Shown here: positions 17,101 to 56,038 of the stretch, one piece after another | How positions within the stretch are numbered: position 1 is the stretch's first letter | How the letters are laid out: each line of letters begins with the position of its first letter | NCBI GenBank assembly: GCA_047495785.1 | Contig: JBLDXI010000074.1 | Location: 930,001 to 994,000 of the forward strand | Length of the DNA: 64,000 nucleotides | Source: Lepidodermella squamata | Taxonomy: Eukaryota; Animalia; Gastrotricha | Reading direction: 5' to 3' | Notes under the pieces: generated by a model | Told to the model about the DNA's origin: nothing | The model's input: only the letters and a program-made list of their open reading frames with translations | Databases searched by the model: none | Program-made: the position numbers and the translations under genes

Positions 17101-20100
17101 CCTAATTCACAGTTCATTCGAAACTCCATCGACGGCGTACTGAGACCAAACAGTAGGGGTTCGAGTTGAGGGCAGGAAGGGCGGGCGGGTAACAGGTACT
17201 GCGCCCTCTTCGCGACCGTCTTGTTAGACATCCAGCAGCGATCGAAGTAATCGCGATTGTGGCCCGGATCGGGCGATTTTAACCGTGCCATTGCCTACCA
17301 ACTCGCACTATTCGGCGTAGCGTTTTTGAAAGTCCGCCAGCGTGCGCACGTTCAGCAATTTCCGAGACGTCGAAAACACGACTTTTGAACTCTTGATCAG
17401 CCGATGAAGCTGACCAGCGGCAGCGAATGCAGTGCGCATTTCCGCAATTTCCCTTTTTGCGTTTTTTCTTTAGGGTCAGACCGGAGTGAATCGCCTGAAT
17501 CCAGCAAATCGGGGCACCAGTTGCCGCCTCTGTCAGTTCGATGTATCGCCCCGATGTTTGCTGTAGAAATCTGCAACCTCTTCAAGTTCCCCTTGTAGCA
17601 AGCGGAACGGCCCGCCCCACCCTCCAAAACGCGGAAAGGAAACGCGGTCAGATTGACAAAAGCTGGCCGGTTTTATTAAGCAACAAGTAACAGTCTTGAC
17701 AAGTATTTATGTATTACTCGACACGAATTCGATGCATAATAAGATTTTGTAAAGCCGCTTCTATCACCGAGCTGTCGACGAAGAGGGTAATTAGTGAAGG
17801 CAAGGAATCGCTTTCGAGAAACAGTGTAACGTTCATTCATGACAACCAGTTATTTAAAGCATCAGGAACACGGTTTGCTGCTGTTTGTCGTGTTGAATAG
17901 CTTCCACGGCGATGCGCCCATTTTTACAGCCAGCTGGCTGATGTTGAGAATATCATTGAATGGCGATTGATCAACTGATTCAGCAAGTGCATCCTTTTTC
18001 GCTCAGTGCTGGCAACAAAAAGCTGGTGAAAAAGTTCGAATTTGTCAAATATTAGCAGCTCAGAAGGCCGAATTTTAAAGCGCTCTGTCGCCTCAGGTTG
18101 CAGCTTTCAGTCGTAATATTCCTGGGCTAACTGCAACTGCCTTTAGGTGAATAGCCGCCAAAGTCTTCAAACTGATTGTTGGCAAGAGTTGCCGTGATGC
18201 GTTGCGCCGTATTAGTGATGAAAGTCGTATATAAATCGCGGACTTTGTGAGGTTGTATAAGTTTCAAAAACTTGGGATTCGATTTCATAAGTTATTAACA
18301 GGAATGGACAGAGTGCAGGCACCATTGTAATGATAATTCATGAGCAGGTAATAGGCGAAGCGGCGATCAGTCTGACCTGCCTGGTCGCTAGTCTCATTGA
18401 ACGCCCTCGTGAACCAAGGCATGAGACCCTCCGAAAAGAACAGCGAAAACCATTCTAGGGCGCCATGTCGAGCCACGCCGGAAGGCAGATGGCCGAGTAC
18501 GTGCAACCGAAATGTTACGAGCTGATTGCTGCCGAGTAGCACGGGAATATTTCACGGAAATGGTTGATTAAACGTGTAGAGGATCTCATATCAAGACTTG
18601 AGGAGTTGCATCTTCGTAGACTTGAAAAGATACAAGCCGATCTCATAGCATAGGATCAAGTAGACAATATCAGGTGGCTTAGCAGCGGATAAAGTCTGCA
18701 GCTTGAAGTGTTTAGCCTTCTTACTGCTCATTGTACTCGGCCCAAGCTGTCCATGCGGCAAATGATCTGGTGGATGGGGACGCTCATCTGCTTCAGCTGG
18801 AGTTCAGGCGAGCATATGCGATCGTGTCTTGCTGCTATAATATAAATTTTCATTCCGGACTCCGGACTCGGGTCGGGCTACGCTTTTGTAGTCATTGTAG
18901 TCATTGGTAAGATGAATTCATAAGAATTTACGCGAGAATTGGTAATAATAAAGCTATGATGGGATGTATAAAAAGTATATCAAGCACGAGGTATGAAAAA
19001 GTATCGCAGGCGCATCATGCTAAGTAGTCTTTGGCTAGATTTTAACTGGGATTTTCAAAGCTGCGAGGTGGCCCGCATTTCTCGCATCGGAAGGCCCTTA
19101 CGTTCACATTTTCATCGACAGCCGTAGTGGGGGAGCTACGCTTCTCGCGGATGAAGCAGCCGCAGCTAACCCCGCACGACGGCTGCCGAGAGCACTTGCA
19201 GCGATAGGTTCCGCCGTACCTCGCCAAATCGTCGTTTCGCCTTCGGAATTAATTCACTGTATTGGATTTCACGTTCATTTTCGTCGATGAGATTCCCTCA
19301 TTTCAGGTTCAGCTTTTCAAGGTGAAAGTAGACCTAGAAAGCTGGTGACATGGCCCCAACGGTTCAATACGGAGGGTTTGAAGGTGTGCCAGACCTCCTT
19401 CATATTTCCCTGACATTTTAGAGGCGTAGTCGTAGTGTGAATCATTAGTGAATTAGTGTCAATCTTCAAAGTGAATTTCTAGCTGTTCATCAGCGATACT
19501 TCTACCAGCGTGGCTGATAGGGTAGTACGGGTCTCCTTTCTCATTCGCTAGTTCATAATATTAAGCTTATCGTTGCCCTATAAAAATTGAATGACAAAGC
19601 TAACAATAATTGGCTAAAAATGGGAAGGAATGCCGAAAAAATATAAAAATGGGACGGGCAGAAATTTGTTAAAAGGATGTTCGCTCTCTTTCGGAATTCA
19701 CGTTTCTCATTGAAGCTATTTTCCATCCATTCTTAGGTGGCGAGAATCTTGAAATATCATTCCGAACTTGGATGTGCGGTGGATCAGTAGAATTCATCCC
19801 CTGTTCACAAGTTCCCCATCTCTGGCGCGATTTCCATCCGTACACATTCCGAAACGGCAAGGACACGCACGGGCTGAACTCAGTCCGCCTTGCCGAGGCT
19901 CTGATGGACGACTACAAGCGGTTCTACTACTGGTACCGGAGATCACTGACCGCAGAAATGGGCGGCGATGTTTCGGAACGGTTGGCGATTCGAAAGCGGC
20001 TCAACTGCAAATCGTTCAAGTGGTTCCTGGACAACGTATACCCGGAAAAGTTCATTCTAGACGAACAAGCGACCGCGTGGGGCTTTGTGAAGAACGAAGG

Positions 20101-20619
20101 TCTTGGCGGTCATCAGATGTGTTTCGACATTTTGAACCGCGACGAAAAGCGGACATTCAATTTGGGCCTTTATTCTTGCCAGGGTGGATCTTCGATGAAC
20201 CAAGTGTTTTCTTTTTCGTTTTGGAACGAATTCAGGCGAGAGGAATCTTGTGCCTATCTGGAAAATGAAGCAAAGTGAGTTGGCAGTTTTTCTCCACAGA
20301 GGTAGCACATCACTTTTTCTTTCATTAAATTTCTAGGAATCCTGATGGCCCACCTGTAACAGTGCCAATGCGTTGGTGCACCCGTGAAGCGAACGATGTG
20401 CCCAGTGCCCCTGTCGAGTTGTGGCGGTATGACCGTGAAACCAAGCAAATCATCCACCAGATGACGAATCGGTGCATAACAGCGAAGGGCGTTGAAAATG
20501 GTGGCGATGCGTTGGCTGTTAAGTGTGACGTTGCGGATCCGTTTCAGAGGTGGACGTGGGAAAATTTGCGGAAAGAAGAATCTCCGTACAACCCAACGGT
20601 TGTTCCTGTTTCTGTGTGA
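14173..20619 (+). CDS. Polypeptide N-acetylgalactosaminyltransferase (GT27, GLY-9/PGANT4-like), paralog B; exons 14173-14916, 16436-16690, 16756-16801, 19737-20274, 20337-20619
   Basis: Same GT27 motifs as paralog A (DAH, WGGEN, MCGG), lectin CFDILNRDEK...FRREESCA, in-phase GT-AG junctions, AATAAA at ~20747. Confidence 0.93.
15290..16310 (-). mobile_element. Degraded ORF-like insertion in GALNT-B intron 1, possibly transposase-derived
   Basis: Begins where intron-1 homology with paralog A ends (~15288). Broken minus-strand frames include QAMAVP-type repeats; no diagnostic motif. Confidence 0.25.
16850..19500 (-). mobile_element. Degraded Cys-cluster (CxC)-type transposon remnant in GALNT-B intron 3
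   Basis: Fragmented minus frames YRCKCSRQPSCGVSCGC...FRCEKCG and RAFNE...DRRFAYYLL with many stops. Confidence 0.3.
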
Positions 20620-21208
20620 TAAATATGGCTCAACGTTTTGGGAGTATGCAATTCTGTAACAATGACAGTTTAGTATTGAGTGATTGCCATGTAATCATGT
20701 CGCTTTAATGTCGATTTTTACATTTTGATGGAAAGCGGTGAAGATGAATAAATTATTTGAATTTCGACCAATTTCGGCAGCAATCTCATTCAGACACAGA
20801 TTTATTCGGGAAGACGCCTTTTTTGGAAATAGAGCGCAAACGCCAAATCATAAATCATGAATTTAAATAATGAATTTGATATAAATTCGAAATTTTTTCT
20901 CAAGCGTTGTATTTCCTGCTTTCCATGACTTTTCCGTCCCTAAAAAGAGTACAAATCCATGTAACATGTAAACAATAGAAACTAAAGATTCCCTAGAACG
21001 CAGGATCTCCCAGAATTCCTTGCTCTTGATGTTTCGCTCGAGATAAGCATGTATTTTCTTCCCTAGAAATGCGAGCTGGCGTTTGCCCATGCACCTTGCG
21101 CGAGATAAGCTTATTTTTTGGCTCAAGATATGACTATCACGATTCCAAGAAATTTAAAATGAATCATCCAACCAAATGAAAATGACTACTTCACCGCCGT
21201 CTCAAGGA

Positions 21209-21216
21209 CTATAAAT
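21209..21216 (+). promoter_or_regulatory. TATA box upstream of the small-ORF/ApoL unit
   Basis: ctataaat ~85 bp before the ATG at 21296. Confidence 0.4.
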
Positions 21217-21295
21217 ATTTCCCCTCGGAGAGAAAGCATAAGTGTAACATTTTTTCTTCACTGAGTAATAACTTGATCCGATACCAAGGGTTTTA

Positions 21296-21568
21296 ATGGT
21301 TTCAATGTTTCCTGATCCTTACAAATACGGCTCGGAACTTGCGCGAGGTATACTCGAAAAACTGGACGAACCAAACAGCCGAGACATTACACAAAGATTC
21401 CTGGTTTCCGCACGAAGACCAATCGACGCTGTGATCGACCGAGCTTACAGGCGAATTCTTTGGCTAATGACGATCGCATTTTTGTATGCAGTTGCTTTTC
21501 TTTTGTTTTGCAAATCAGACCTATCCAACTTATTCAACGGCAATAGAATAAATTTCGAGCTCCAGTAG
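21296..21568 (+). CDS. 90-aa single-TM orphan ORF directly upstream of the ApoL-like gene
   Basis: ATG-initiated, hydrophobic helix ILWLMTIAFLYAVAFLLF preceded by RR; follows a TATA box. Confidence 0.4.
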   Translation: MVSMFPDPYKYGSELARGILEKLDEPNSRDITQRFLVSARRPIDAVIDRAYRRILWLMTIAFLYAVAFLLFCKSDLSNLFNGNRINFELQ

Positions 21569-21631
21569 TTTCAAACAAAACTATTAATAGCAATTCAAAT
21601 TTGTATAGTTGTTTCAAAAATTATGTGAGAT

Positions 21632-22660
21632 ATGGTTGATTGGCTCGAAAATTTGGTAGCTAATATCGGGATCTCGCTTTTTGAGACTGATCGGCATGAA
21701 ACTGAAGAACCTGAATCTGAGCAATTCGGGCGAATAACCTGGAGAACTCTTTTTGGCATGCTCATCCTCTTCATCGCCATTCTTTTTTTGCTATGGTGCT
21801 TGCCATTCACGCTTGCACTAAGCCGAGTGCAGGCCTTAGCTCTTACTGCATCGGTCTGTGGGATCAGCTGCAATAACAGTCCTTCCACAGACGATGGAGA
21901 CGCCGAAGCAGATGATGAACCAGAGGAAAATCCGGCGGAGGAGGAATTGGAAAATCGCGACAATAAGAACTACATCTCGGTTGAAGATCCTGGCCACCCG
22001 GCTCTCGATAGCCTTCCTGTCGCAGGTCGGGTAACGACACAGCTTGGGAAAGCGGGTGTGGAAATAGCTGAGATCGTGACCGATGTTTCAAAAGCAGTCC
22101 TCAAAGCAGCCGATAAAGTTCAGGACGTTGTATCGCCGCTAGCGCCAGCCGCAAGGTCCACTCTGCAAGTTGCCGGTGTCGTGCTGTCGGCTGTGACGAT
22201 CCCTTTGGATGTTTGGATTTTGATTCAAGAGGCGTCGAAATTACACAAAGATGAACCATCCAAGTTTGTGAGGAAGCTAATTGATGCTAAAGTTCTGATT
22301 ATGGTATACCTCGCACGAGGGTTCGACAAAGCGGGAAATACTATAGATGACGCCACCCGGCAATCCTGGACCAATAGTGTTCGCGAAATGGAAGCTGCTA
22401 TCGTTGAACTGACTGAGTTGACGAGGGATGCCAGGATATGCCGAATCACTGGCGCTGTCGGTGGGATAGTGGGTTCAGGTCTTGCAATCGCAGGATTTAT
22501 TCTGGCTCCATTCACGTTCGGTGGTTCGCTTGGGTTGACAATTGCTGGTGGTGTTATCGGAGGATCAGCTGGTGCAACTGGAGGCGTGGCTTCACTTGTC
22601 GAGTTTATCAAGTCTCGCAAAGCCTCTAAGAAATATTCAGCAATAACTGATAACTTATAA
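21632..22660 (+). CDS. Apolipoprotein L-like protein, intronless, conserved halves in permuted order
   Basis: Contains GAVGGIVGSGLAIAGFILAPFTFGGSLGL (ApoL Gly-rich hairpin) and VAGVVLSAVTIPLDVWILIQEASKLHKDEPSK (ApoL C-terminal motif); AATAAA at ~22727. Confidence 0.8.
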   Translation: MVDWLENLVANIGISLFETDRHETEEPESEQFGRITWRTLFGMLILFIAILFLLWCLPFTLALSRVQALALTASVCGISCNNSPSTDDGDAEADDEPEENPAEEELENRDNKNYISVEDPGHPALDSLPVAGRVTTQLGKAGVEIAEIVTDVSKAVLKAADKVQDVVSPLAPAARSTLQVAGVVLSAVTIPLDVWILIQEASKLHKDEPSKFVRKLIDAKVLIMVYLARGFDKAGNTIDDATRQSWTNSVREMEAAIVELTELTRDARICRITGAVGGIVGSGLAIAGFILAPFTFGGSLGLTIAGGVIGGSAGATGGVASLVEFIKSRKASKKYSAITDNL

Positions 22661-24052
22661 CTTATAAATGTTTTCGATCACAGGATTCGTTTGACGAACT
22701 ATATTTTCTTAATTTATTCAAGCCCCAATAAAGCCTAAATGGGGCATTCGAGCTATAAATTTACACCGCGGAATAAGTACTGAACTTTCATTTTCTCATG
22801 TCAAACCTTGCCGAACTGCCAAACGTTAGAATTTATTTCAAACCTTGAAACAAGAAAAACCTGATAGTCCAATGCCGAAAACTAATGATCACTAACCATC
22901 ACCGATGACCATCACGTAAGAATTGTTGCGATATTCAGCGTCAAACGGTAGCATTTTAGTTTAGGAATGTAGGAATGTTCCACCGGCATGACTATGAAAT
23001 ACCAGTAACACATTTCTCGGGAAATAAATTTAGTTGCCGGTCAGGCGTATGAATGCACTGTGGTTGTCAAATTGATATATGCTGGCAAAACCACTTTCTA
23101 TGATGCTATGATGCTAACCCTCGCGTGATATGATGCGTGTTGTATAAAAAATCATTTTTAAACTATCGGGCTAATATCAATACTCGTTGAAGGATCTTTC
23201 CAGGCAGAACTGAACCTGCTTGAACAAGACTGGAATTCATTACCAAACAGTACTTTACCGAGTTGTGCACTGGGAGAAGATTGAAAAAACCAGCAGAACT
23301 TTGCCTGGCACCACATTCGGTTAATCCAAATTTTGAGCAAGATAAGCGCCGCTGATTCAATGGTATGACCTAATTAATAATGGTTATATCCGAAAATAGC
23401 TGAAAAATGAGCGCAATTTTTTGTTCGTTGAATCTTTTCTTGTTTTATTATCTACATAATTCCGGCAGTTAGATTGCGCCTTAGAGCCCTTTTTGGCATG
23501 TTGCCCTTTGAATGAATGCAACGGTCATTTGAACTCAAAATTGCATGAATGAAATGGCGTGAATTGCGAGTTGGAAGGAACATCCACGGCGAGCTTATTG
23601 ACAGCATTATCGGTAAGACCTGGAAACAACAACGCTGCACTGGGTCGCCTGGCAGCAATGTGACAGCTTGATGCGAAAAAACGAACCGGTCAAACTACGC
23701 ACCGACGCACGCTCCATTTCCTTTCACACGTAAACGATTAAATATTAATAGCCGCAAAATGCAGCCAACAGGGCATTGCATTTTTTATTCTTCAGCGATT
23801 AACAGCGTAGTGCTGGAGATCAATGTATGCAATTACCACGAATGTTATTGCATTCAATCAGTGGTAATTTCTGAATTTGCTTCCCATTTTCTTATCAATA
23901 GCAAGCCACTTTGAAGATGAATGGAAAAGAATGGAGTTTTTCAATACACTGGTTCAAGATCAGCGAGCCTAAACTTTAACCTCAATCTTACGAAGCCTTT
24001 TCTACTCCGTTAGGAATTAAATGTCAGACTTTTTTAAAATTGAACTTTCGAG

Positions 24053-24868
24053 ATGATTTTGGCGCTTTACGAGCGCAATGCAACACTGTACGCGGCGTGG
24101 AAGCGTCGCGGAGCTGACAAGTGCCTGCGCTGGATCGCGAGCTCAAATGGAGCTATTCCAGATGGGGCCGTGCAGGTCGGATTCCTTGGCGGCAGAGGAG
24201 GTGAACCGATTTACGTAGGGCGCATTTCTCTGCCAAATAACGACACTGTACCAGGTATGTTAAATGAATTTTTGTTTTTTGCAGTAGTCTCGGGTTCAGT
24301 TTCATCCCATTACAACCGTTCTAATGATGAGATCCTCTTCTACCTGTCCCCCGTTCTTCTGTTCTTTTGGTCATTCTAACCAGGAAAGTCTGAGATTAAA
24401 CTAAAGAACCAGAAAATCGAAAACCCATACAATCACATCTGTACCTCTAATGTTAGTTAGAGATTTGAAAGTTTTCTCCACCCTATTTCAGGCACTGTCA
24501 TACCTAGTCGAGGCGCATGTTACGCAGCGTGGCATGGCCGCGAACTTGAGGCCTTCGACTATGAAGTTCTCATCAACTCAAACCCTGACAAATGTCACCT
24601 GCACTGGTCAAGTTTAGGCCCCGAGTGCGAATTGCCAGACGGCGCTGTCAAAGCCGGCATAGATTTCGAATCGGACTCCTTGTTGTTCGTAGTTCGCGGA
24701 CGCCCCCCTGGCGCCCAGGGTGGGACACACACAGGCCAGCTCAAAAGTGGGGAAGCTATCGCGAAAATGTCATTCGACGGCGCCGAACATCAGTTGGATA
24801 ACTTCAAAGTGCTATGTCGGAGATTTATACATGCCTACTCTAACAACTACCGGCCGTTTACTTGCTAA
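24053..24868 (+). CDS. DM9-repeat protein; exons 24053-24254, 24492-24868
   Basis: WIASSNGAIPDGAVQVG...EPIYVGR...PGTVIPSRGACYAAWHGRE...YEVL, followed by a second repeat ending FKVLC. Confidence 0.88.
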
Positions 24869-25821
24869 TAATGAAATTTTATAAGTTTTCTGAAACATCT
24901 TGTGGGCTTTGTCGAGTTCTGCGATTATTCATGTATCTTAAAATGAACCTAATAAACCTCGCCTAATAAGCTGAGTTTCACAAGGTTTGAAAATAAAAGC
25001 TATTTTCGATATAGGTATCCCAACATGAAGCCTCGTGGACATAGGAATATTGGCCGCGCGCATGGCAATATTACGCCGATAGCAAATTTAGATCAAACCA
25101 TCCGCTGTTCAGGCAAACAAGCAAAAAACTTTAATCCACTGGCAGATTAGCGGTATATGCTCGGAAATTTATGTGAAATGAACGTCGATGCTATGTGCTG
25201 CTCGTAATAAAGACTACTGACGACATGAATAGAATTAAAAACCTCAAAGGAAGCAAGAGGCAAGAAAGTAAAGCTCAAGCTGCGAGGGGCTGGGGCTCCG
25301 ACCAACAGAAAAGTATTCCAACTTTTCACGTGAAGACATTAACCGGTAGCGAATGTAATCTCAACTTTGACAAGGCGTGTTTTTGTTCAAATGTGATGAA
25401 TGATCGTTGAAGCCCGAGCTTTAGCAAAACAATCGGTAGCCGTTAGCAGCTTATAGCGCCTTTATTCTAATTCCTTTAGCGTCCAGCATCCATCGGCTCT
25501 GATATATAGTTCGAAATAATACGGCAAATTCAAGAAGGGTCGAAATTAATAAACAACCTAAATGTCAGCCAGAGATAGCATATAGGTACATCACAAGAAA
25601 ATCTATCATGTGCTTTGTGTTCAGTGCTTTGTTGCGAGACACTTACGTGCTCCTCTTTAAACCTGGTTTTCGCCGGAGTTTGAGGGAGTTCTGCGGTTGA
25701 ATTTGGTAAAGAACGCACATTTTAACTGGTCATACATGCGGTTTCCATCGGTATAAATTTGATCAACTGAATGAAAGGTTACATTCGCCCTAGCTAATTT
25801 ATTTGCTAATCGAGAGTAACT

Positions 25822-26028
25822 ATATCGTTAGCGACGCGCCAAAACAACCACTTTGATGACTCATTTGATCGTACTTTGACGAGCCGAACGTAAAGAAGGA
25901 GTACGTTCGGCTTTTTGAGCACTGATCGTACTCATCGTAATTTGAATTTACGTTCAAAAGTCGAACGTACTTTCCATAAAAAAGCTATAAATAGTAAAGT
26001 GGTTGTTTTGGCGCGTCGCTAACGATAT
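25822..26028. mobile_element. MITE (~207 bp)
   Basis: ~33-bp TIR atatcgttagcgacgcgccaaaacaaccacttt and its reverse complement; internal palindromes. Confidence 0.75.
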
Positions 26029-26403
26029 TCATCATCGGCAAAGCCATTATCCTTTTGTTTTAACGATAGCGAATATTTCACCCTATTTACCTCTTTTACA
26101 TTCTTAAACTCAGCGAATGAAAAATAAGACATTAAAAATTTAGGCTACCTCCATATTGTTTACAAGCCAGCATTTTGTCTTTTTGTGCAAACGAATTTTT
26201 TATAAGATTTTAGCGTAGTACATATGAAAATTTGTACAAGAAGCCGATGCTGCTTCCTCCTTTGTTTTTTCATTCACGAAGTGCATAAGCTTCCCCGAAT
26301 CACATGAATGCATGCGAACTAGAGTTTGAACAGTTGGCTGTAGGAGCAATACTAAGCAGCAAAACTTCATCATCATCTTTTTATTTATAATCTTCGATCT
26401 ACC

Positions 26404-26721
26404 ATGAACAAGATCCTCCTTCTCACTCTTGTGGTGGTGAGTTTTACATCAGCATGATATCGTTTGGATTGATACCGTTTCATTTTACAGGCTTTCGCTG
26501 CTGTGTTGGCTGTATCGGCAGAGGAGAAAAAGTCCCGCAAGCCTAGCGGTTCAGCGGTCAAGGCCCATGCTGCTAACAAGAGCGGCCAAAAGGTCGGAAA
26601 GATTAGCGAGAAGATGGCCAAGAAGTTGGGCGAATTGCTCAAAAGGAAGCCCTTTGTCAGCAAGCCAGCTTTGCGCGAGGTTGACTCCGAAGAAGCGTCA
26701 GCTAGACGATGTAATTACTAG
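26404..26721 (+). CDS. Secreted cationic peptide precursor, family A copy 1; exons 26404-26436, 26491-26721
   Basis: Signal MNKILLLTLVV|AFAAVLAVSA, Lys-rich core with amphipathic KVGKISEKMAKKLGELLKRK, acidic tail LREVDSEE. The phase-0 signal-peptide intron is conserved in all three paralogs. Confidence 0.85.
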
Positions 26722-44774: not shown

Positions 44775-46853
44775 ATGATCACCGTTTCTAAAACGGCTGA
44801 TCTTCTTATGCGTTTCGACGGTGAAGGCGAAATGCCTGAGCCTACTAACAGTGTGTCGCCCACTGCCCCGTCCGCAACGCCGCAGCTTGCCGAGTTCCTG
44901 ATCCAGGCTGGTCCTCAGCCTAGTACTAGTGTCCCCAAAAAAAGTAAGGGTGCAAGCGCTATGAAGTTAGGCTCGCAGGTTGACTCGACGTCCCTGTTAA
45001 CAAAGAGCGGGAATGGTTCAAGTTTAGGGGTTTCAAGCGCTTCTCAGTTAGACTCGAGAGTTGACTCGATGTCCTCTGCGACTGGGCGCGGTTCAAGCTT
45101 TAAGGGGCCCTCTTCCACCACAGGTGAAGTTGTTAAACGTAAGTCTGACAGCTCACCTGAAAGTAAGATACGCAAGGTAGCCTCAACAGTGAGGTTATCT
45201 GATTCTTCCAACGAGGAGTCCGCTGCTGTCGACGAGAACCAGGAGATGGAAGCCGAAGACCAAGAAGAAGGCGAGTACGTCGACCCAATCGGTGACCTAA
45301 GCGACAGCGACCCCGATACCGACGGCGACGATGACGAGGATGACGATGAAGACGAAGATGGCGAAATGGAGTGGACAACTATCAACGAAAACTCGAAGTC
45401 CAAGTTCCGTATCGTGATAGTCGACGGAATATCGCCGATTTTCTCGACCATCTACATGTGCCTAAGAGAACTGAACCGCGTGGCCCCAGACGTGAAACAT
45501 GTTCGTGTCTGGGTGTATCCCCGTGGCGCTTTTGGCATGCTCTGCAAGGATTTAGCCAGCGTCAACGCCGTCTTGAGCAAGGCCAACTGGCCTGAGAACG
45601 CCTTTGGCGGGAGAGCCCGACCACACAGGCCATCCAAGGTAGAGATTGATGAGGCACCAGGTGCCAAAGCGGTGTTGGAAGCGCAAGTCCCAACCGGCGA
45701 GCAAGCGGCGCGCATGGAAGCTCGAGCCAAGCATTTGGACGAAGACCGGCGTAAAGCCGTGTGTGTCAACTTCTTCGACGGGGCCTCTGTTGACGACATC
45801 CTCGACGGTTGGGAAGACGTCGTAGATCAGGTCTGGCCTATTAAAGGCACTACGACGTGCTTCGGGGTCCTCTGCAAATCGGTGCGTCTCTGTGAGGAAC
45901 TCGTGGCCAGAGGGCGCGACTTTCTTGGCCTCCGCATAGCCGCTAGGGTGTGGCGATCCGACCCAGAGGTAGAGATATGCGGCAGGTGTCTCAACATCGG
46001 CCATCTCACTGGGAACTGTCGAGCAGCTCTCCGGTGTGCTACCTGTGGGCAAGAAGGCCACGACAGCAGTAGTTGCAGGCAACAGGCGAAGAGGTGTGCA
46101 AGGTGTGATGGAAGTCATTCCGGCTTCTACAGAGGTTGCCGTATCGTTAAGAACGAGGCTGAGCGTCGCCGCAAAGCCGATGAAGCCGAAGCCAGAGCCA
46201 TCCGGAACCGAAGTGCCGGTGACGCCACCCTCCGAAATGGCATGTCATTCGCAGGAGCGACCGGAGGAAGACCAGTACCGCCACCAGTACCGCCACCAGC
46301 ACCACCAGGTTTCGAAGGATCTCAGCCCAACCCAGGGCTAGCAACTCGCAACATTCAGCCGAACGACTCGCTATCAACAGCTGAGCGATCTGAACTAACA
46401 GCCTTGCGCTTCAGCGTAGCCGCACAGGCGGCTGAAATTGACCGATTGAACAACTCCGTCGAGCGCCTCACTGCCGCACTAGAGAGGCTGATGAATCAAG
46501 GTCTGCCAGCGCCACCAGTAGCCGCAGCACAGCCTTTTCAGACACAAGAGATGGAGGATAGGCTGTTCAATAGGATTATGGACGCCTTCAACCGGGCCAA
46601 GATCGCAGGTGATATGCGGGCCCAAGCGTTCCCACAGCATATCATTGCTCGCCCAGCCATGATGGCTTCGCCGAACATGGCCGTCCAATCTCCTTCGCAC
46701 TACAGCGTCGAAAATCAAACTTCACCACCCTTTCAATGGGACGCTGGTCAGCTTGGTCAACCCATGGTGATCCAGTCGCAGTTCAGCCAACAGCCTACTT
46801 TCGTTCAGCGACCATTCTCTGGAGTGCCCCTTCAATACTCCAATAATGCCTAG
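44775..46853 (+). CDS. LINE ORF1 (gag-like, three CCHC knuckles), copy 1
   Basis: CGRCLNIGHLTGNC, CATCGQEGHDSSSC, CARCDGSHSGFYRGC; first in-frame ATG at 44775. Confidence 0.92.
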   Translation: MITVSKTADLLMRFDGEGEMPEPTNSVSPTAPSATPQLAEFLIQAGPQPSTSVPKKSKGASAMKLGSQVDSTSLLTKSGNGSSLGVSSASQLDSRVDSMSSATGRGSSFKGPSSTTGEVVKRKSDSSPESKIRKVASTVRLSDSSNEESAAVDENQEMEAEDQEEGEYVDPIGDLSDSDPDTDGDDDEDDDEDEDGEMEWTTINENSKSKFRIVIVDGISPIFSTIYMCLRELNRVAPDVKHVRVWVYPRGAFGMLCKDLASVNAVLSKANWPENAFGGRARPHRPSKVEIDEAPGAKAVLEAQVPTGEQAARMEARAKHLDEDRRKAVCVNFFDGASVDDILDGWEDVVDQVWPIKGTTTCFGVLCKSVRLCEELVARGRDFLGLRIAARVWRSDPEVEICGRCLNIGHLTGNCRAALRCATCGQEGHDSSSCRQQAKRCARCDGSHSGFYRGCRIVKNEAERRRKADEAEARAIRNRSAGDATLRNGMSFAGATGGRPVPPPVPPPAPPGFEGSQPNPGLATRNIQPNDSLSTAERSELTALRFSVAAQAAEIDRLNNSVERLTAALERLMNQGLPAPPVAAAQPFQTQEMEDRLFNRIMDAFNRAKIAGDMRAQAFPQHIIARPAMMASPNMAVQSPSHYSVENQTSPPFQWDAGQLGQPMVIQSQFSQQPTFVQRPFSGVPLQYSNNA

Positions 46854-49824
46854 TCTTAGTACACTTAGAAAAAGTAGAATCATCGTAATCCAGTGGAATT
46901 GCCAGGGCATCAAGGCGAAAAGAGCTGAACTTCTCCACATTATAGAGCAATATGGGCCTAATGTCATCCTGTTAAACGAGACATGGCTAAAGTTCGGCGA
47001 GAAATTCGACCTCCCTGGCTACACTGCTTTCCGCGTAGATAGATTAGGTGCGTCCGGGCTAAACTGTGGCGGCGTCGCAATCTTCATTAGTCAATCAAAG
47101 CCAATACTAGATTGTGCCGAAGTAAAGTTTGCGCCAGCCTCTAGAGGCGAGTGGCTTGCAGTTGAGCTGCTAGTAGGCGAAGTCAACGTCTCAACGAGAA
47201 TTACGATTGCCACAGGGTACAATCCTTCAAATAGCCCATTAGACACATCTTTCATTAGAGAGGTCTTGAGTGATCCGTCTACAAACTCGATCTTCGCTGG
47301 CGACTTGAACGCCTGGGCGGAGGAGCTAGGTTGCGCGGAATGGAACGTTCAGCGAACGGGAAGTGGCGGGCTCTTTTCGGAGTTCCTAAAAACCTCCCCT
47401 GTGGTATTGCATAGCTCACCAACTGCTCCCACGCGGTTCAGGGAAGGTCACGTGTCGCGAGTCTTAGATGTGTGGCTAAGTTCACTGGCTGGTGATAAGT
47501 GTTTCAACCGTGCGCCTGCTGTTCTAGATTGCTATCGAAGCGATCATGCCGTCACTATCGCGGGCCTCACACTCGTGCTCCCGGAGCGGAACTCCTGTTC
47601 ACCGTTGGCCAATGCCTCGGTGCCGGCAGCCGCTCGGGACGTTCGTTTCGATTTTTTGAACGCCGACTGGCCTGAATACCAGAGAGTATGCGCGGAGAAG
47701 ATAGCGCCAGTCGTTCGCCCAAAAGGCGGGGACTCGGTCAGGGCGCTGGACGTCTTCGCCGCAAGTATCTCCGAGGTAATAATGAGTAGCGCGAAAACCA
47801 CGCTAACTCGTGTGCCGGTGGCTAAATTGCCTAAGGTACGTCTAAGCCACGCTGTAAAGCGGGCTATCGAGGCAAGGAATCGGTGTGACAGGAAAAATCG
47901 GAACGAACGCTCTGCTGCGTCTAAAGCGGCTTTAAATGCTGCGACACGGCAGGTGGCGCGAGAGGTCGCGTTAGAGGCGGATAAAAAATGTCGGCGACGG
48001 TTGAACCACATAGCACAGCTTTTTCAGGCGCAGCAAGCTGCCCTGGCGTGGCAACACGCACAGCGTATTTTGGGGGAATCGAAAGGCTCGCAACGCGTGA
48101 TCCCCACCCTTGAATTAGCGAACGGGAAGAAGGTGACTGCAGACCCAGAGAAGGCGAGGGTTTTTGCTGAAAATTGGGCGCCGACGTTCCAGGCCGCGCC
48201 TCGTAGCTCACCGCACCAGGCGGACCAAGAATTTTGGGACTCGATCGACCAAGCATGCGAGGTAGACGAAGAGCTCAACGCCTCTCTAACAATACCAGAT
48301 AAGTTAGAGGTCATGATTTCTAGGAACGCCTTCAACTCCCAGCTTGCCCGGTTGAAGCTTAAAGCTCCTGGGGAAGATGGGATCCTCAACCCGTTGATTA
48401 AGAACGCCCCACCACCTCTCCTAGAGGCTATCCTTCTCCTGTTTAATTTATCTTTGAACGCCGGCTATCTGCCAGCTGCTTGGAAAATTGGAATTGTGGT
48501 ACCGGTGCCCAAGGCGGGGAAATCCCCACGGTCCCTGGATGGGTATAGGCCAGTTTCCTTAACCAGCTGCATGGCAAAGCTTCTGGAGGCCGTCGTGGCT
48601 GGGTTCATTCTCGAGTTCTGCTTGCGGAACAAGATTTTGACGCCGAGCCAAGTCGGGTTCCAGAAGTGGCTGTCAGTTTTGGATGCCATCCTCAGGCTTA
48701 TGCACGACATCACAGACGGTTTCGTGCATAAGGATGAGTTGGGCAGACCCGATAAATTAACTACAGTTGTGGCGTTCCTAGACTATAAGGCAGCTTTTGA
48801 TTCCATATGGCACAACGGTTTACGCATGGTCTTAAAAGGCCTTGGCCTACCCGTGGCCGTTGTGCGATGGATCTCAGATTTTTTACGCGACAGGCGTATG
48901 CGAGTCAGAGTAGGTGATAGCTGTAGTGAGGATGTCGAAGTAGCTTGCGGAGTCCCTCAGGGATCACCATTATCCCCGATACTCTTCATCATCTACACAT
49001 CTTCGTCCCTCCCAGCGGAGGTAGACAAGGACGACGCCCTCAAGAGAACTGCCGCGGCGGCATACGCCGACGACCAGGCTGTGTGGGCTACTGGGCGACC
49101 GGCCCCACTCGCAACTGCTCGTGTCCAAGCGGCACTTCGGGTCACAGAACGCTGGTCTCAGCGCTGGAGACTTGACCTGAACCCGAGGAAGTGCGAGTGG
49201 GTCGCATTCGGCGCCAACGTCAACCACACAGCTGGTCAACTCCAGTTGGGAGGCATCTGCCTGCCTAGAGTGCAACAGTTCAAGTACCTAGGTGTTTGGC
49301 TGTCCAAGCACTTGTGCTGGACGCCGCACTTAGAGCACGTCAGCGCACGAGCCCTTCCTCGTATTTTCGCCCTTTTTCGTGGCAGGGTAAAGACTCACCC
49401 CACCTTGGGTCTCCTGTTCTACAAGAGCGTCATCCGGCCGCTGTTGGAATTCGGTGCCCCGGCGTTCGCCAACTCGAAGCCACAGTTCATCGAAAAACTG
49501 GCGGTCTTAGAACGGCGGGCCCTTAAGATCATCTTGGGTCTCCCACGCCGGTGCCCGAATGAGATCTATCAGCGGCGGTTGAAGGCCACTTTTCCGGAGT
49601 TCCAGCTGATCGAAGAACGTTTGTCCACCCTATCGTTCAACTGCTTCAACAGGGCGCTTGAAGCAGGTAGCGTGCTAGGCGAAATAGTTCGTCAGAGTCG
49701 CGATAGGCCCGTGCCGGAGAGTATATCCCCAGTGCGTTTCTTTCTTGACCATCTATTGGGAGCTGGGCCTCTACCTTCGGTTAGATCGTCCTTTGATCGA
49801 CTTCCAGCGATCCTAGCAGTTTAG
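46846..49824 (+). CDS. LINE ORF2 (AP endonuclease + reverse transcriptase), copy 1
   Basis: QWNCQG, LNETW, GDLNA, SDH; YRPVSLTS, FLDYKAAFD, GVPQGSPLSP, YADD, KYLGV. No RNase H recognised. Confidence 0.97.
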   Translation: MPSLSTLRKSRIIVIQWNCQGIKAKRAELLHIIEQYGPNVILLNETWLKFGEKFDLPGYTAFRVDRLGASGLNCGGVAIFISQSKPILDCAEVKFAPASRGEWLAVELLVGEVNVSTRITIATGYNPSNSPLDTSFIREVLSDPSTNSIFAGDLNAWAEELGCAEWNVQRTGSGGLFSEFLKTSPVVLHSSPTAPTRFREGHVSRVLDVWLSSLAGDKCFNRAPAVLDCYRSDHAVTIAGLTLVLPERNSCSPLANASVPAAARDVRFDFLNADWPEYQRVCAEKIAPVVRPKGGDSVRALDVFAASISEVIMSSAKTTLTRVPVAKLPKVRLSHAVKRAIEARNRCDRKNRNERSAASKAALNAATRQVAREVALEADKKCRRRLNHIAQLFQAQQAALAWQHAQRILGESKGSQRVIPTLELANGKKVTADPEKARVFAENWAPTFQAAPRSSPHQADQEFWDSIDQACEVDEELNASLTIPDKLEVMISRNAFNSQLARLKLKAPGEDGILNPLIKNAPPPLLEAILLLFNLSLNAGYLPAAWKIGIVVPVPKAGKSPRSLDGYRPVSLTSCMAKLLEAVVAGFILEFCLRNKILTPSQVGFQKWLSVLDAILRLMHDITDGFVHKDELGRPDKLTTVVAFLDYKAAFDSIWHNGLRMVLKGLGLPVAVVRWISDFLRDRRMRVRVGDSCSEDVEVACGVPQGSPLSPILFIIYTSSSLPAEVDKDDALKRTAAAAYADDQAVWATGRPAPLATARVQAALRVTERWSQRWRLDLNPRKCEWVAFGANVNHTAGQLQLGGICLPRVQQFKYLGVWLSKHLCWTPHLEHVSARALPRIFALFRGRVKTHPTLGLLFYKSVIRPLLEFGAPAFANSKPQFIEKLAVLERRALKIILGLPRRCPNEIYQRRLKATFPEFQLIEERLSTLSFNCFNRALEAGSVLGEIVRQSRDRPVPESISPVRFFLDHLLGAGPLPSVRSSFDRLPAILAV

Positions 49825-51138: not shown

Positions 51139-53067
51139 ATGAAGTTAGGCTCGCAGGTTGACTCGACGTCCCTGTTAACAAAGAGCGGGATCGGTTCAAG
51201 TTTAGGGGTTTCAAGCGCTTCTCAGTTAGACCCGAGAGTTGACTCGACGTCCTCTGCGGCTGGGCTCGGTTCAAGCTTTAAGGGGCCCTCTCCCACCTCA
51301 GGTGAAACTGTTAAACGGAAGTCTGACAGCTCACCTGACAGTAAGGTACGCAAGATAGCTTCAACAGTGAGGCTATCTGCATCTTCCAACGAGGAGTCCG
51401 ATGCTGTCGTCGAGAACCAGGAGATGGATGCCGAGGATCAGGAAGAAGGTCAGCTCGTCGACCCAATCGGTGATCTGAGTAGCAGCGACCCCGATACCGA
51501 CGGCGACGATGACGAGGATGACGAGGATGACGAAGGTGAAATGGAGTGGCAAACTGTCAATGACTCGTCCAAGTCCAGGTTCCGTATCGTGATAGTCGAC
51601 GGAATATCGCCGATTTTCTCAACCATCTACATGTGCCTGAGAGAGCTGAATCGCGTGGCCCCAGACGTGAAACATATTCGCGTCTGGGTGTATCCCCGTG
51701 GTGCGTTTGGCATGCTCTGCAAGGACTTGGCCAGCGTCACCGCGGTCCTGAGCAAGGCCAACTGGCCTGAGGACGCCTTTGGTGGGAGAGCCCGACCCCA
51801 TAGGCCATCCAAGGTAGAAGTGGATGAGGCACCAGGTGCCAAGGCGGTGTTAGAAGCGCAAGTTCCAAGCGGCGAGCAAGCGGCACGCATGGAAGCTCGA
51901 GCCAAGCATTTGGACGAAGACCGGCGTAAAGCCGTGTGCGTCAACTTCTTCGACGGGGCCTCTGTTGACGACATCCTCGACGGTTGGGAAGACGTCGTAG
52001 ATCAGGTCTGGCCTATCAAAGGCACTACGACGAGCTTCGGGGTTCTCTGCAAATCGGTGCGTCTCTGCGAGGAACTCGTGGCCAGAGGGCGCGATTTCCT
52101 TGGCCTCCGCATAGCCGCCAGGGTGTGGCGTTCCGACCCAGAGGTAGAGATATGTGGCAGGTGTCTCAACATCGGCCATCTCACTGGGAACTGTCGAGCG
52201 GCTCTCCGGTGTTCTACCTGTGGGCAAGTAGGCCATGAAGGCAGTAGTTGCAAACAGCAGGCGAAGAGGTGCGCCAGATGCGATGGCAATCACTCCGGCT
52301 TCTACCGAGGTTGCCTTATCGTGAAGAACGAGGCCGAGCGTCGCCGCAAAGCCGATGAAGCCGAAGCCCGAGCCATTCGTAACCGAAGTACCGGAGATGC
52401 CAACCTCCGTAATGGCATGTCGTTTGCAGGAGCAGCCGGAGGTGGATACGCACAACCACCACCAGTACCACCACCTGTACCACCACCTGTACCGCAACCA
52501 GGACCACCAGGATTCAATGGAACCCGGCCCTACCAGAGACCGGCGTCTCACAACAACCACCAGGACGAGTCAACGCTAGCACCGGACGAACGAAGCGAGC
52601 TAACCACTCTACGGTTTAGCGTAGCCGCACAGGCGGCTGAAATTGATCGGCTAAACAGTTCTGTTGAGCGGTTGACGGCTGCCCTTGAGAAGTTACTCAA
52701 CCAAGGTCCTTCGATGCCAGCAATAGTACCACAACCGGTCGCACAACCGATTCCGCTCCAGGAAATGGAAGATCGTCTATTTGCAAGGATAATGGATGCG
52801 TTCAGCCGATGCAAGAACGCAGGCGATATGCGGGCCCAATCATTCCCGCAGCAAGTCATTGCTCGCCCAACCATGTTGCCTTCGTCGAACATGGTTGTTC
52901 ATTCTCCTTCGCACTACAGCGTCGAGGGCCAGAATGCAGTACCTTTTCAATGGGACGCTGGCCAGCTTGGTCAAGCCATGGTGATCCAGCCACAGTTCAG
53001 CCAACAGCCTACTTTCGTTCAGCGACCATTCTCTGGAGTGCCCCTTCAATACTCCAATAATGCCTAG
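51139..53067 (+). CDS. LINE ORF1 copy 2 (1-bp deletion at ~51123 uncouples the upstream ATG at 50957)
   Basis: Copy 1 aaaaaaagtaag versus copy 2 aaaaaaataag; the frame from MKLGSQ is open with three knuckles. Confidence 0.88.
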   Translation: MKLGSQVDSTSLLTKSGIGSSLGVSSASQLDPRVDSTSSAAGLGSSFKGPSPTSGETVKRKSDSSPDSKVRKIASTVRLSASSNEESDAVVENQEMDAEDQEEGQLVDPIGDLSSSDPDTDGDDDEDDEDDEGEMEWQTVNDSSKSRFRIVIVDGISPIFSTIYMCLRELNRVAPDVKHIRVWVYPRGAFGMLCKDLASVTAVLSKANWPEDAFGGRARPHRPSKVEVDEAPGAKAVLEAQVPSGEQAARMEARAKHLDEDRRKAVCVNFFDGASVDDILDGWEDVVDQVWPIKGTTTSFGVLCKSVRLCEELVARGRDFLGLRIAARVWRSDPEVEICGRCLNIGHLTGNCRAALRCSTCGQVGHEGSSCKQQAKRCARCDGNHSGFYRGCLIVKNEAERRRKADEAEARAIRNRSTGDANLRNGMSFAGAAGGGYAQPPPVPPPVPPPVPQPGPPGFNGTRPYQRPASHNNHQDESTLAPDERSELTTLRFSVAAQAAEIDRLNSSVERLTAALEKLLNQGPSMPAIVPQPVAQPIPLQEMEDRLFARIMDAFSRCKNAGDMRAQSFPQQVIARPTMLPSSNMVVHSPSHYSVEGQNAVPFQWDAGQLGQAMVIQPQFSQQPTFVQRPFSGVPLQYSNNA

Positions 53068-56038
53068 TCTTAGTACACTCAGAAAAAGTAGAATCATCGT
53101 AATCCAGTGGAATTGCCAGGGCATCAAGGCGAAAAGAGCTGAACTTCTCCACATTATAGAGCAATATGGGCCTCATGTCATTCTTTTAAACGAGACTTGG
53201 CTAAAGTTCGGCGAGAAATTCGACCTCCCTGGCTACACTGCTTTCCGCGTAGATAGATTAGGAGCTTACGGGCTAAACTGTGGCGGCGTCGCAATCTTTA
53301 TTAGTCAGTCAAAGCCAATACTAGATTGTGCCGAAGTAAAGTTTGCGCCAGCCTCTAGAGGCGAGTGGCTTGCAGTTGAGCTGCTAGTAGGCGAAGTCAA
53401 CGCCTCAGCGAGACTTACGATTGCCACAGGGTACAATCCTTCACATAGCCCATTAGACACATCTTTCATTAGAGAGGTCTTGAGTGATCCGTCTACAAAC
53501 TCGATCTTCGCTGGCGACTTGAACGCCTGGGCGGAAGAGTTAGGTTGCGCGGACTGGAACGTTCAGCGAACGGGAAGCGGGGGGCTTCTTTCGGAGTACC
53601 TAAAATCCTCCTCTGTGGTTTTGCATAGCTCGCCAACTGCTCCCACGCGGTTCAGGGAAGGTCACGTGTCGCGAGTCTTAGATGTATGGCTCAGTTCACT
53701 GGCTGCTGATAAGTGTTTCAACCGTGCGCCTGCTGTTCTAGATTGCTATCGAAGCGATCATGCCGTCACTATCGCGGGCCTCACACTCGTGCTCCCGGAG
53801 CGGAACTCCTGTTCACCGTTGGCCAATGCCTCGGTGCCGGCAGCCGCTCGGGACGTTCGTTTCGATTTTTTGAACGCCGACTGGCCTGAATACCAGAGAG
53901 TATGCGCGGAGAAGATAGCGCCAGTCGTTCGCCCAAAAGGCGGGGACTCGGTCAGGGCGCTGGACGTCTTCGCCGCAAGTATCTCCGAGGTAATAATGAG
54001 TAGCGCGAAAACCACGCTAGCTCGTGTGCCGGTGGCTAAATTGCCTAAGGTACGACTCAGCCATGCTGTCAAGCGGGCTATCGAGGCCAGGAATCGGTGT
54101 GACGAGAAAAATCGAAATGAACGCTCTGCTGCATCTAAAGCGGCTTTAAATGCTGCGACACGGCAGGTGGCGCGAGAGGTCGCGATAGAGGCGGATAAAA
54201 AATGTCGGCGGCGGTTGAACCACATAGCACAGCTTTTTCAGGCGCAGCAAGCTGCCCTGGCGTGGCAACACGCACAGCGTATTTTGGGGGAATCGAAAGG
54301 CTCGCAACGCGTGATCCCCACCCTTAACTTAGCGAACGGGACGAAGGTGACGTCAAACCCAGAGAAGGCGAGGGTTTTTGCTGAAAATTGGGCGCCGACG
54401 TTCCAGGCCGCGCCTCGTAGCTCACCGCATCAGGCGGACCAAGAATTTTGGGACTCGATCGACCAAGCATGCGAGGTAGACGAGGAGCTCAATGCCTCTC
54501 TAACAATACCAGATAAATTAGACGTCATGATTTCTAGGAACGCGTTCAACTCCCAGCTTGCCCGGTTGAAGCTTAAAGCTCCCGGGGAAGATGGGATCCT
54601 CAACCCGTTGATTAAGAATGCTCCCCCACCTCTCCTAGAGGCTATCCTTCTCCTGTTTAATTTATCTTTGAACGCCGGCTATCTGCCAGCTGCTTGGAAA
54701 ATTGGAATTGTGGTACCGGTGCCCAAGGCGGGGAAATCGCCACGGTCCCTGGATGGGTATAGGCCAGTTTCCTTAACCAGCTGCATGGCAAAGCTTCTGG
54801 AGGCCGTCGTGGCTGGGTTCATTCTTGAGTTCTGCTTGCGGAACAAGATTTTGACGCCAAGCCAAGTCGGGTTCCAGAAGTGGCTGTCAGTCTTGGATGC
54901 CATCCTCAGACTTATGCATGACATCACAGACGGGTTCGTGCATAAAGATGAGTTGGGCAGACCTGATAAATTAACTACTGTTGTGGCGTTCCTTGACTAC
55001 AAGGCAGCTTTCGACTCCATTTGGCACAACGGTTTACGAATGGTCCTTAAAGGCCTTGGCCTACCCGTAGCCGTTGTGCGGTGGATTTCGGACTTCTTAC
55101 GCGACAGGCGTAAGAAAGTAAGGGTAGGAGACAGTTTCAGTGAAGACGTCGAGGTAGCTTGCGGAGTCCCTCAGGGATCTCCTTTATCCCCGATACTCTT
55201 CATCATCTACACTTCTTCGTCCCTCCCAGCGGAGGTCGACAAGGACGACGCGGTAAAAAGAACTGCCGCGGCGGCATACGCCGACGACCAGGCTGTGTGG
55301 GCTACAGGGCGACCGGCCCCACTCGTCACTGCTCGTGTCCAAGCGGCACTTCGGGTCACAGAACGCTGGTCTCAGCGCTGGAGACTTGACCTGAACCCGA
55401 GGAAGTGCGAGTGGGTCGCATTCGGCGCCAACGTCAACCTCACAGCTGGTCAACTCCAGTTGGGAGGCATCTGCCTGCCTAGAGTGCAACAGTTCAAGTA
55501 CCTAGGTGTTTGGCTGTCCAAGCACTTGTGCTGGACGCCGCACTTAGAGCACGTCAGCGCACGAGCCCTTCCTCGTATTTTCGCCCTTTTTCGTGGCAGG
55601 GTAAAGACTCACCCCACCTTGGGTCTCCTGTTCTACAAGAGCGTCATCCGGCCGCTGTTGGAATTCGGTGCCCCGGCGTTCGCCAACTCGAAGCCACAGT
55701 TCATCGAAAAACTGGCGGTCTTAGAACGGCGGGCCCTTAAGATCATCTTGGGTCTCCCACGCCGGTGCCCGAATGAGATCTATCAGCGGCGGTTGAAGGC
55801 CACTTTTCCGGAGTTCCAGCTGATCGAAGAACGTTTGTCCACCCTATCGTTCAACTGCTTCAACAGGGCGCTTGAACCAGGTAGCGTGCTAGGCGAAATA
55901 GTTCGTCAGAGTCGCGATAGGCCCGTGCCGGAGAGTAAATCCCCAGTGCGTTTCTTTCTTGACCATCTATTGGGAGCTGGGCCTCTACCTTCGGTTCGAT
56001 CGTCCTTTGATCGACTTCCAGCGATCCTAGCAGTTTAG
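53060..56038 (+). CDS. LINE ORF2 (APE + RT), copy 2
   Basis: 992 aa, all catalytic motifs intact. Confidence 0.97.
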   Translation: MPSLSTLRKSRIIVIQWNCQGIKAKRAELLHIIEQYGPHVILLNETWLKFGEKFDLPGYTAFRVDRLGAYGLNCGGVAIFISQSKPILDCAEVKFAPASRGEWLAVELLVGEVNASARLTIATGYNPSHSPLDTSFIREVLSDPSTNSIFAGDLNAWAEELGCADWNVQRTGSGGLLSEYLKSSSVVLHSSPTAPTRFREGHVSRVLDVWLSSLAADKCFNRAPAVLDCYRSDHAVTIAGLTLVLPERNSCSPLANASVPAAARDVRFDFLNADWPEYQRVCAEKIAPVVRPKGGDSVRALDVFAASISEVIMSSAKTTLARVPVAKLPKVRLSHAVKRAIEARNRCDEKNRNERSAASKAALNAATRQVAREVAIEADKKCRRRLNHIAQLFQAQQAALAWQHAQRILGESKGSQRVIPTLNLANGTKVTSNPEKARVFAENWAPTFQAAPRSSPHQADQEFWDSIDQACEVDEELNASLTIPDKLDVMISRNAFNSQLARLKLKAPGEDGILNPLIKNAPPPLLEAILLLFNLSLNAGYLPAAWKIGIVVPVPKAGKSPRSLDGYRPVSLTSCMAKLLEAVVAGFILEFCLRNKILTPSQVGFQKWLSVLDAILRLMHDITDGFVHKDELGRPDKLTTVVAFLDYKAAFDSIWHNGLRMVLKGLGLPVAVVRWISDFLRDRRKKVRVGDSFSEDVEVACGVPQGSPLSPILFIIYTSSSLPAEVDKDDAVKRTAAAAYADDQAVWATGRPAPLVTARVQAALRVTERWSQRWRLDLNPRKCEWVAFGANVNLTAGQLQLGGICLPRVQQFKYLGVWLSKHLCWTPHLEHVSARALPRIFALFRGRVKTHPTLGLLFYKSVIRPLLEFGAPAFANSKPQFIEKLAVLERRALKIILGLPRRCPNEIYQRRLKATFPEFQLIEERLSTLSFNCFNRALEPGSVLGEIVRQSRDRPVPESKSPVRFFLDHLLGAGPLPSVRSSFDRLPAILAV

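Follow-up and report, generated by a model that had tools for sequence, protein, structure and literature searches.

An apolipoprotein L-like protein in which the pore-lining motif precedes the membrane-insertion hairpin

The reading frame at positions 21632..22660 (+ strand) of the window encodes a 342-residue protein, here called Q (its residues are written Q1-342), and sequence comparison confirmed that Q is a member of the apolipoprotein L (ApoL) family with inverted module order, the pore-lining motif standing before the Gly-rich hairpin. The window is the whole 64 kb stretch of DNA that was analysed (positions 930001-994000 of contig C74), and the assembly in which the searches were made is eukaryotic and comprises 121 Mb in 151 contigs. 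The inverted order is real and far beyond chance, since three independent methods (Pfam, a custom HMM, and BLASTP to paralogs encoded in the same genome) agree on it. It is without precedent both among the closest relatives, 151 in number, and in the literature that could be searched, where no permuted ApoL was found. Judged by its sequence, Q is a member of a known family and is new in the order of its modules.

The Pfam ApoL model PF05461, which has a gathering cut-off of 25.9 bits, matched Q with 46.3 bits in two stretches: Q145-208 aligned with model positions 211-274 (pore-lining motif) and Q251-338 with positions 69-156 (Gly-rich hairpin). The two matches thus lie in inverted order and are not colinear with the model, as the first-pass annotation had predicted for a permuted protein. 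Scanned alone, the hairpin part scored 37.9 bits and the motif part just 14-16 bits. The same arrangement was obtained with an HMM built from six canonical relatives, which placed Q142-217 at model positions 163-248 (26.7 bits, E 2e-10) and Q247-336 at positions 24-113 (87.1 bits, E 8e-29), and again in the BLASTP comparison with the paralog C32a, in which Q148-216 matched residues 324-391 (E 1.8e-7) and Q259-334 matched residues 172-247 (E 8.5e-16). The canonical paralogs on contig C32 are encoded in ~420-aa exons that are colinear with PF05461 positions 69-286. The premise that in ApoL proteins the hairpin normally precedes the motif held in 100/100 relatives in which both modules could be detected, and the observation that in Q the motif comes first and the hairpin last was borne out by all three methods.

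Along the chain, all segments being on the + strand, Q begins with an acidic N-terminal segment without relatives (Q1-37, 21632..21742, net charge -7). It is followed by a very hydrophobic, Gly-poor stretch (Q38-80, 21743..21871; 2 Gly in 43 residues, KD peak 2.77), which contains GRITW, PFT and LALT and in which the hydrophobic N-terminal helix occupies about residues 39-62, and by an acidic, Pro-rich linker with a net charge of -15 that is predicted to be disordered (Q81-130, 21872..22021). Both the N-terminal hydrophobic helix and the acidic linker described in the first-pass annotation are therefore present. The ApoL alignment starts inside this linker, residue 95 onward corresponding to the canonical middle region: in BLASTP with the canonical 253-residue protein P0032, Q95-218 matched residues 121-236 (pairwise E 8e-12), and several further relatives align with Q from residues 92-138 onward.

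The middle helices of the first ApoL unit (Q131-175, 22022..22156; helix 130-167) were delimited by HMM, BLASTP and AlphaFold, and the pore-lining helix module of the same unit (Q176-205, 22157..22246) by Pfam, the custom HMM and the family alignment. The motif LDVWILIQEASKLHKDEPSK covers residues 192-211 (22205-22264), with the codon of Asp193 at 22208-22210. In the family alignment the D193 column holds Asp in 96% of 98 relatives, and Q also agrees with the consensus of these relatives at G182, P191, L204, H205, K206, P209 and S210. The next segment (Q206-262, 22247..22417) comprises the C-tail of unit 1 (to ~218), a junction of ~16-28 residues, and the pre-hairpin N-helix of unit 2 (from ~235-247). 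The membrane-insertion module of unit 2, a Gly-rich helix-turn-helix hairpin, occupies Q263-322 (22418..22597; Pfam, BLASTP, HMM, AlphaFold) and has 16 Gly in 60 residues, a CRITG cap and an APFTFGGS turn. Q ends with a short basic tail of net charge +3 and the TAA stop (Q323-342, 22598..22660), so that unit 2 stops ~20 residues past the hairpin and is without a middle region or pore-lining helix of its own.

A structure prediction, which had been proposed as a check, was made with AlphaFold2 from a 62-row alignment whose coverage was ~12 rows at Q161-220 and ~58 rows at Q241-342. The model had a mean pLDDT of 72 and a pTM of 0.41, which are moderate values, with the first half thinly covered. 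It contains a helix at 31-75, disorder at 76-129, helices at 130-167, 172-204 (pore-lining) and 209-233, and a confidently predicted C-terminal helical hairpin formed by helices 240-291 and 298-341 with the turn at PFTFGG (pLDDT 80-89). Helix 209-233, which comes after the pore-lining helix, is internal and runs on into unit 2. A Foldseek search of the PDB with this model returned nothing at E <= 0.001, and neither Foldseek nor the sequence search found a full-length ApoL structure in the PDB. The matches of Q to PDB sequences were dismissed as chance matches to cytochrome b562 fusion partners.

As had been claimed, the frame is clean over its 342 codons. It was recovered from the ORF list, Pfam and the sequence itself as a complete ORF running from ATG to TAA on the + strand; the frame opens one codon before the ATG, which lies two codons downstream of an in-frame stop, and an AATAAA read from the sequence at 22727..22732 (+), 67 nt beyond the TAA, is a candidate polyadenylation signal. 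ORFs are sparse in the window and introns are present; the Q gene itself apparently, and probably, consists of a single exon. Codon periodicity was in frame in the two ApoL-homologous parts (p = 4e-9 and 5e-6). The coding signal of the first 94 codons was weak, frame 0 being favoured by ~20 bits with a periodicity p of 0.18, and the DNA flanking the ORF had a negative coding score in all frames.

Genome search found a single copy of the Q ORF. Truncation of the locus by a transposon was rejected, because the flanks on both sides are single-copy as well. No further ApoL module was detected by tblastn in the 64 kb window with three paralogs as queries, no ApoL exons or relics were detected near Q by a six-frame HMM scan of positions 15000-31000 with filters off (+/-6-8 kb), and none was found on contig C74 outside Q. 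Hidden flanking ApoL exons or relics were rejected on these grounds, and the suspicion that Q might be the middle exon of a multi-ApoL gene found nothing in the flanks to sustain it. The upstream neighbour is a multi-exon gene of the polypeptide GalNAc-transferase type with a GT2 domain and a ricin-type lectin domain (14125-20619, Pfam), and the downstream neighbour is an exon of a DM9-repeat protein (24053-24379; PF11901, E 3e-8).

Two other features of the window were recorded. A 90-aa ORF (21296..21568) lies in the same frame as Q, 63 nt upstream of it, and has a TM-like stretch of its own, RRILWLMTIAFLYAVAFLLFC; a TATA-like TATAAATA box is located upstream of it at 21210-21217. This ORF had no Pfam match; it may represent a small gene in its own right, an upstream ORF or a first exon. 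That it is a duplicate of the 5' end of Q was rejected: at the protein level the two are alike only in the TM stretch, the DNA alignment does not convince, and the z of about 4 obtained in the comparison with Q is inflated by composition. Farther downstream, a 992-aa ORF occurs twice (46846..49824 and 53060..56038), each time behind an ORF of 642-712 aa; the whole block (44715-56038) has a GC content of 49-56%, compared with ~42% elsewhere in the window, and resembles a large element or a pair of genes in two copies.

The exhaustive search of 1.8 billion protein representatives yielded 518 matches at E <= 1e-3, the best of them (E 4e-22) to the hairpin only. No match at 1e-30 and no ortholog of Q was found among these representatives, and none of the 518 matches extended to Q1-94. 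A word-indexed protein search gave two matches, both limited to the hairpin. The named matches were mollusc and fish ApoL-like proteins. When the module layout was scored in the best 151 of the 518 relatives, 100 had the hairpin followed by the motif, 47 had the hairpin only and four (P0012, P0148, P0005 and P0015) were tandem multi-ApoL proteins; the order motif to hairpin, which it had been suggested to look for in relatives, occurred in 0/151 of them and is found in Q alone. Since it has no ortholog, the Q gene may be young or idle.

Among the tandem proteins, P0148 of Condylura (mole) has three ApoL domains, and P0005 of Mugilogobius (goby) and P0015 of Caranx (trevally) have two each. P0012 of Haliotis rubra has a hairpin-motif-hairpin layout, and in BLASTP Q183-314 was colinear with it across its motif-to-hairpin junction (E 5e-10). 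In P0012 one segment is repeated exactly, and this abalone protein may derive from gene models that were merged. In P0076 a ricin lectin is fused to the ApoL N-helix and hairpin, PF05461 positions 63-155 being found at residues 180-272 of 292. The tandem-fused intermediate that is expected from permutation by duplication thus appears to exist in the family, and some of its examples may be merged models; tandems of the P0012 type and P0076, taken together, suggest that nature has produced the predicted intermediate and also proteins that end in the hairpin.

Other ApoL genes of the same genome were also noted. On contig C32, at about 2377200-2389100 (L001:1223-3661, L001:4238-6385 and L005:2009-4113), there are three genes in tandem, each consisting of an exon for a GBP-type GTPase N-domain (PF02263, E 1.2e-18) and, after ~260 nt, an exon that ends in a colinear ApoL (PF05461, 64 bits). 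The GTPase and ApoL exons were searched separately, not joined, and the three genes probably encode GBP-ApoL fusion proteins. Two further paralogs, on contig C7 (L002:2534-3442, -) and at C32:441189 (L003:2642-3427, +), are identical by eye over their ~246 first residues; from there on the C32:441189 copy departs from the other and ends just ahead of the pore-lining motif (…GMFVVSIDNNTIIMYYCLWL), and by its sequence would be a recent duplicate that either is without the pore-lining module or has an intron there.

Compact invertebrate ApoLs cover PF05461 positions about 64-291. In the same coordinates Q runs from ~178 to 285 and then from 69 to 156, which amounts to ~86% of the compact domain with each part present once; a 94-residue N-terminal extension has been added. 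Since the ~20-45 residues normally found downstream of the hairpin are absent, Q would not be a perfect permutation. The homology to unit 1 stops at Q218 and that to unit 2 starts at Q235-247, with neither a stop codon nor an intergenic remnant between them. An old C-tail that continues in frame into an old N-helix is the mark left when two units are fused tail to head, and Q probably arose in this way, by head-to-tail fusion of two ApoL units. Unit 1 would have contributed the middle helices, the pore-lining helix with D193 and the C-tail (Q95-218), and unit 2 the N-helix and the Gly-rich hairpin (Q235-342), cut ~20 residues past the hairpin; the outcome would be a near-complete compact ApoL whose segments occur once each, cyclically shifted, with the hairpin at the end. 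The earlier proposal of a fused tandem duplicate trimmed at both ends stands as far as the fusion is concerned, for which the in-frame junction between tail and N-helix and the tandem multi-ApoL relatives both speak. Trimming is shown for the 3' end only; of the first unit, the middle, the pore-lining helix and the tail are retained, from Q95 onward. To see whether the two halves belong to one lineage, their similarities to 102 canonical relatives were compared by rank correlation, which was rho = -0.08 for Q, a value to be read against canonical controls that gave just 0.05-0.44. We consider it rather probable that Q is a real stand-alone gene, probably with a single exon, in which two ApoL units are fused tail to head.

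Other explanations of the inverted order were weighed against this one. Misassembly is common in tandem gene families, and the Haliotis protein P0012 does resemble a merged model with its exactly repeated segment, but it is scarcely credible that the assembly created Q from pieces of two ApoL genes: the junction in Q is in frame, contains neither a repeat nor intergenic sequence and is located inside single-copy DNA, and the genome holds no other copy of either half above 47% identity, which leaves nothing to mis-join. It is also very improbable, though less so, that Q is one exon, internal or terminal, within a longer gene that is multi-ApoL or fused to another domain, and that the apparent permutation comes from viewing one section of a repeat. 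The relatives do include proteins in which the ApoL domain occurs two or three times (P0148, P0005 and P0015), the same genome joins ApoL exons to GTPase exons, and an ORF in the same frame lies 63 nt upstream; however, ApoL modules are absent from the rest of the 64 kb window and of the contig, the frame opens one codon before its ATG and closes with a TAA followed by AATAAA, inspection of the sequence near the 3' end showed no good GT donor, and the GalNAc-transferase and DM9 neighbours are unrelated. Somewhat less improbable, yet still quite unlikely, is that Q is a non-functional remnant, either what is left of a tandem ApoL array in decay or a frame that is not translated and is still open because the rearrangement is recent. 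The missing ortholog, the single genomic copy and the weak coding signal of the first 94 codons are all compatible with a remnant. On the other hand, 342 codons are open, 130 of them without ApoL homology, the pore-lining helix and the hairpin keep the invariant Asp and most consensus residues, and the flanks hold no decayed traces of the lost ApoL parts. Moreover, the halves of Q are just 33-47% identical to any paralog, which indicates that the event is old, and an unconstrained frame would by now hold stop codons.

The hydrophobic segment Q38-80 is either a new membrane anchor or the first unit's hairpin with lost glycines. The first-pass annotation had called this TM helix new; that it is a hydrophobic helix was upheld, but its newness is in doubt, as it occupies the exact place expected for the hairpin of unit 1, with which it has GRIT, AI, PFT, S and LxLT in common. 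In the 230-residue protein P0013, residues 31-222 are colinear with Q25-218, and the agreement includes EQFGRITW/EQIGKIAY, AI, PFT/PIT, S and AL..S..G; the distance from PFT to PLD is 133 residues in Q, and the family range is about 133-169. This colinear alignment and the spacing suggest a first hairpin in which the glycines were replaced, an origin that we regard as a serious possibility, short of an even chance. A hairpin HMM built from 156 segments gave only -1.0 bits on Q1-100, a score that was reached in 9% of cases after full shuffling and in 30% after shuffling in blocks, and a Smith-Waterman comparison of the N-terminal segment with Q's own hairpin gave z = 0.04 against shuffles. No recognisable first hairpin ahead of the pore-lining helix was found, therefore, by HMM, shuffles or self-comparison; a decayed hairpin is without statistical support and is retained on positional grounds.

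Taken further, the positional argument leads to a different description of the whole protein, in which Q comprises one and a half tandem ApoL copies: Q1-222 would be a whole canonical unit whose hairpin, at 38-80, had its glycines replaced and turned into an ordinary TM segment, and in Q223-342 a partial duplication would have supplied one more N-helix and hairpin. This description, the chief alternative to the permutation, is unlikely, though to be taken seriously, and the same holds for its consequence that two insertion elements would flank one pore-lining helix. Besides the colinearity with P0013 and the PFT-to-PLD spacing, it is favoured by the hairpin HMM, which puts 'PFTLALS' at turn positions 48-54, by the position of the ATG ~33 residues ahead of 'GRIT' (40-45 in compact ApoLs), and by the identical hairpin-motif-hairpin layout of P0012. 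It is opposed by the HMM score and the self-comparison just described, by the AlphaFold model, which has one straight helix at 31-75 with no turn at PFT, and by the DNA of Q38-80, which is T-rich, so that hydrophobic residues are easily encoded there by chance.

With the tail-to-head fusion as the preferred reading, a mechanism can be proposed by analogy with human APOL1, in which the Gly-rich hairpin forms the domain for membrane insertion (TM1-2), the helix bearing Asp348 is the pore-lining TM4, and a C-terminal zipper drives oligomerisation (PMC8446801, PMC8358165). The pore-lining Asp, D348 in APOL1, is conserved throughout APOL1-6 (its role is taken from PMC8358165), and a free C-terminal zipper beside the pore-lining helix is required for the opening of the APOL1 channel (PMC8446801). 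The N-terminal helix would keep Q permanently anchored in a membrane; on a pH or voltage trigger its Gly-rich hairpin would insert in the manner of the APOL1 membrane-insertion domain, and the D193 helix would then line a cation-conducting pore. Q would likely serve as an innate-immune or membrane-permeabilising effector, like other ApoLs. Both flanks of the N-terminal helix are acidic, and the orientation of the helix in the membrane cannot be called for this reason. There is no ground for the further claim that the permutation would change the topology. With four passes a bundle begins and ends on one side of the membrane, and in any bundle with an even number of helices a cyclic shift should preserve the relative directions of the helices and change the connectivity of the loops. 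The change in connectivity would be that the tail of the pore-lining helix is no longer free and the end of the hairpin is free instead. That Q is a functional, naturally circularly permuted ApoL channel is possible but doubtful.

The membrane fold of ApoL proteins is still argued from mutagenesis and accessibility mapping. Because Q keeps both the hairpin and the pore-lining helix with their order swapped, it would be a ready-made, natural means of finding out on which connections insertion, gating and oligomerisation depend. If the proposal is true, the insertion hairpin can be separated from the Asp-bearing pore-lining helix, the two modules can trade places in the chain, and a soluble conditional pore former has become a permanently membrane-anchored one, either through a gained TM helix or through remodelling of its own hairpin. 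Q and the probable GBP-type GTPase fusions would be signs of free recombination of ApoL modules in the same animal, which bears on the diversification of innate-immune pore formers. The value of the case is limited by its being a single orphan gene.

In the comparison with other helical pore formers, bacterial alpha-pore-forming toxins of the ClyA/AhlB/SmhB/MakA type occupied the top Foldseek rows with non-significant scores (E 0.16-0.7, TM 0.2-0.27). They share with Q a helical bundle with a hydrophobic hairpin, a generic resemblance on which no family claim is based. P0076 resembles Q in having the ApoL N-helix and hairpin at the C-terminal end, with 28 residues beyond the hairpin, but it lacks a pore-lining helix, and the module ahead of its ApoL part is a beta-trefoil lectin instead of the rest of an ApoL. 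The tandem multi-ApoL proteins (P0148, P0005, P0015 and P0012) share the motif-to-hairpin junction with Q; unlike Q, they keep a recognisable first hairpin and usually the last motif, and several may be merged predictions.

The compact ApoL-like proteins of invertebrates and fish (PF05461; P0001, P0032 and P0013; Haliotis, Mercenaria, Patella) share the modules of Q at 33-47% identity. Common to them and to Q are the N-helix, the CRITG-capped hairpin with the APFTFGGS turn, the middle helices and the P-L-D...L-H-K/G-x-P-S helix. They have the hairpin first wherever both modules are present, whereas in Q the order is reversed; at its N-terminus, Q furthermore carries a hydrophobic helix and an acidic linker that they do not have, and it is without the ~20-45 post-hairpin residues. 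Q and the other compact ApoLs are without the N-terminal ~68 Pfam positions of vertebrate ApoLs.

Q resembles human APOL1-6 (PMC8446801, PMC8358165) in its Asp-bearing amphipathic helix and in its Gly-rich uncharged hairpin, which is like that of APOL3-6, and from this likeness a pH- or voltage-triggered cation channel would be expected. The equivalence of residues between Q and human APOL1 is derived from Pfam and the family alignment, not from a direct comparison. In the APOL1 model the membrane-insertion domain with TM1-2 is followed by PTM3, the pore-lining TM4 with D348 and the C-terminal leucine zipper, and the order in Q differs from this: the helix after the pore-lining region of Q runs into unit 2, whereas its counterpart in APOL1-6 is a free C-terminal zipper.
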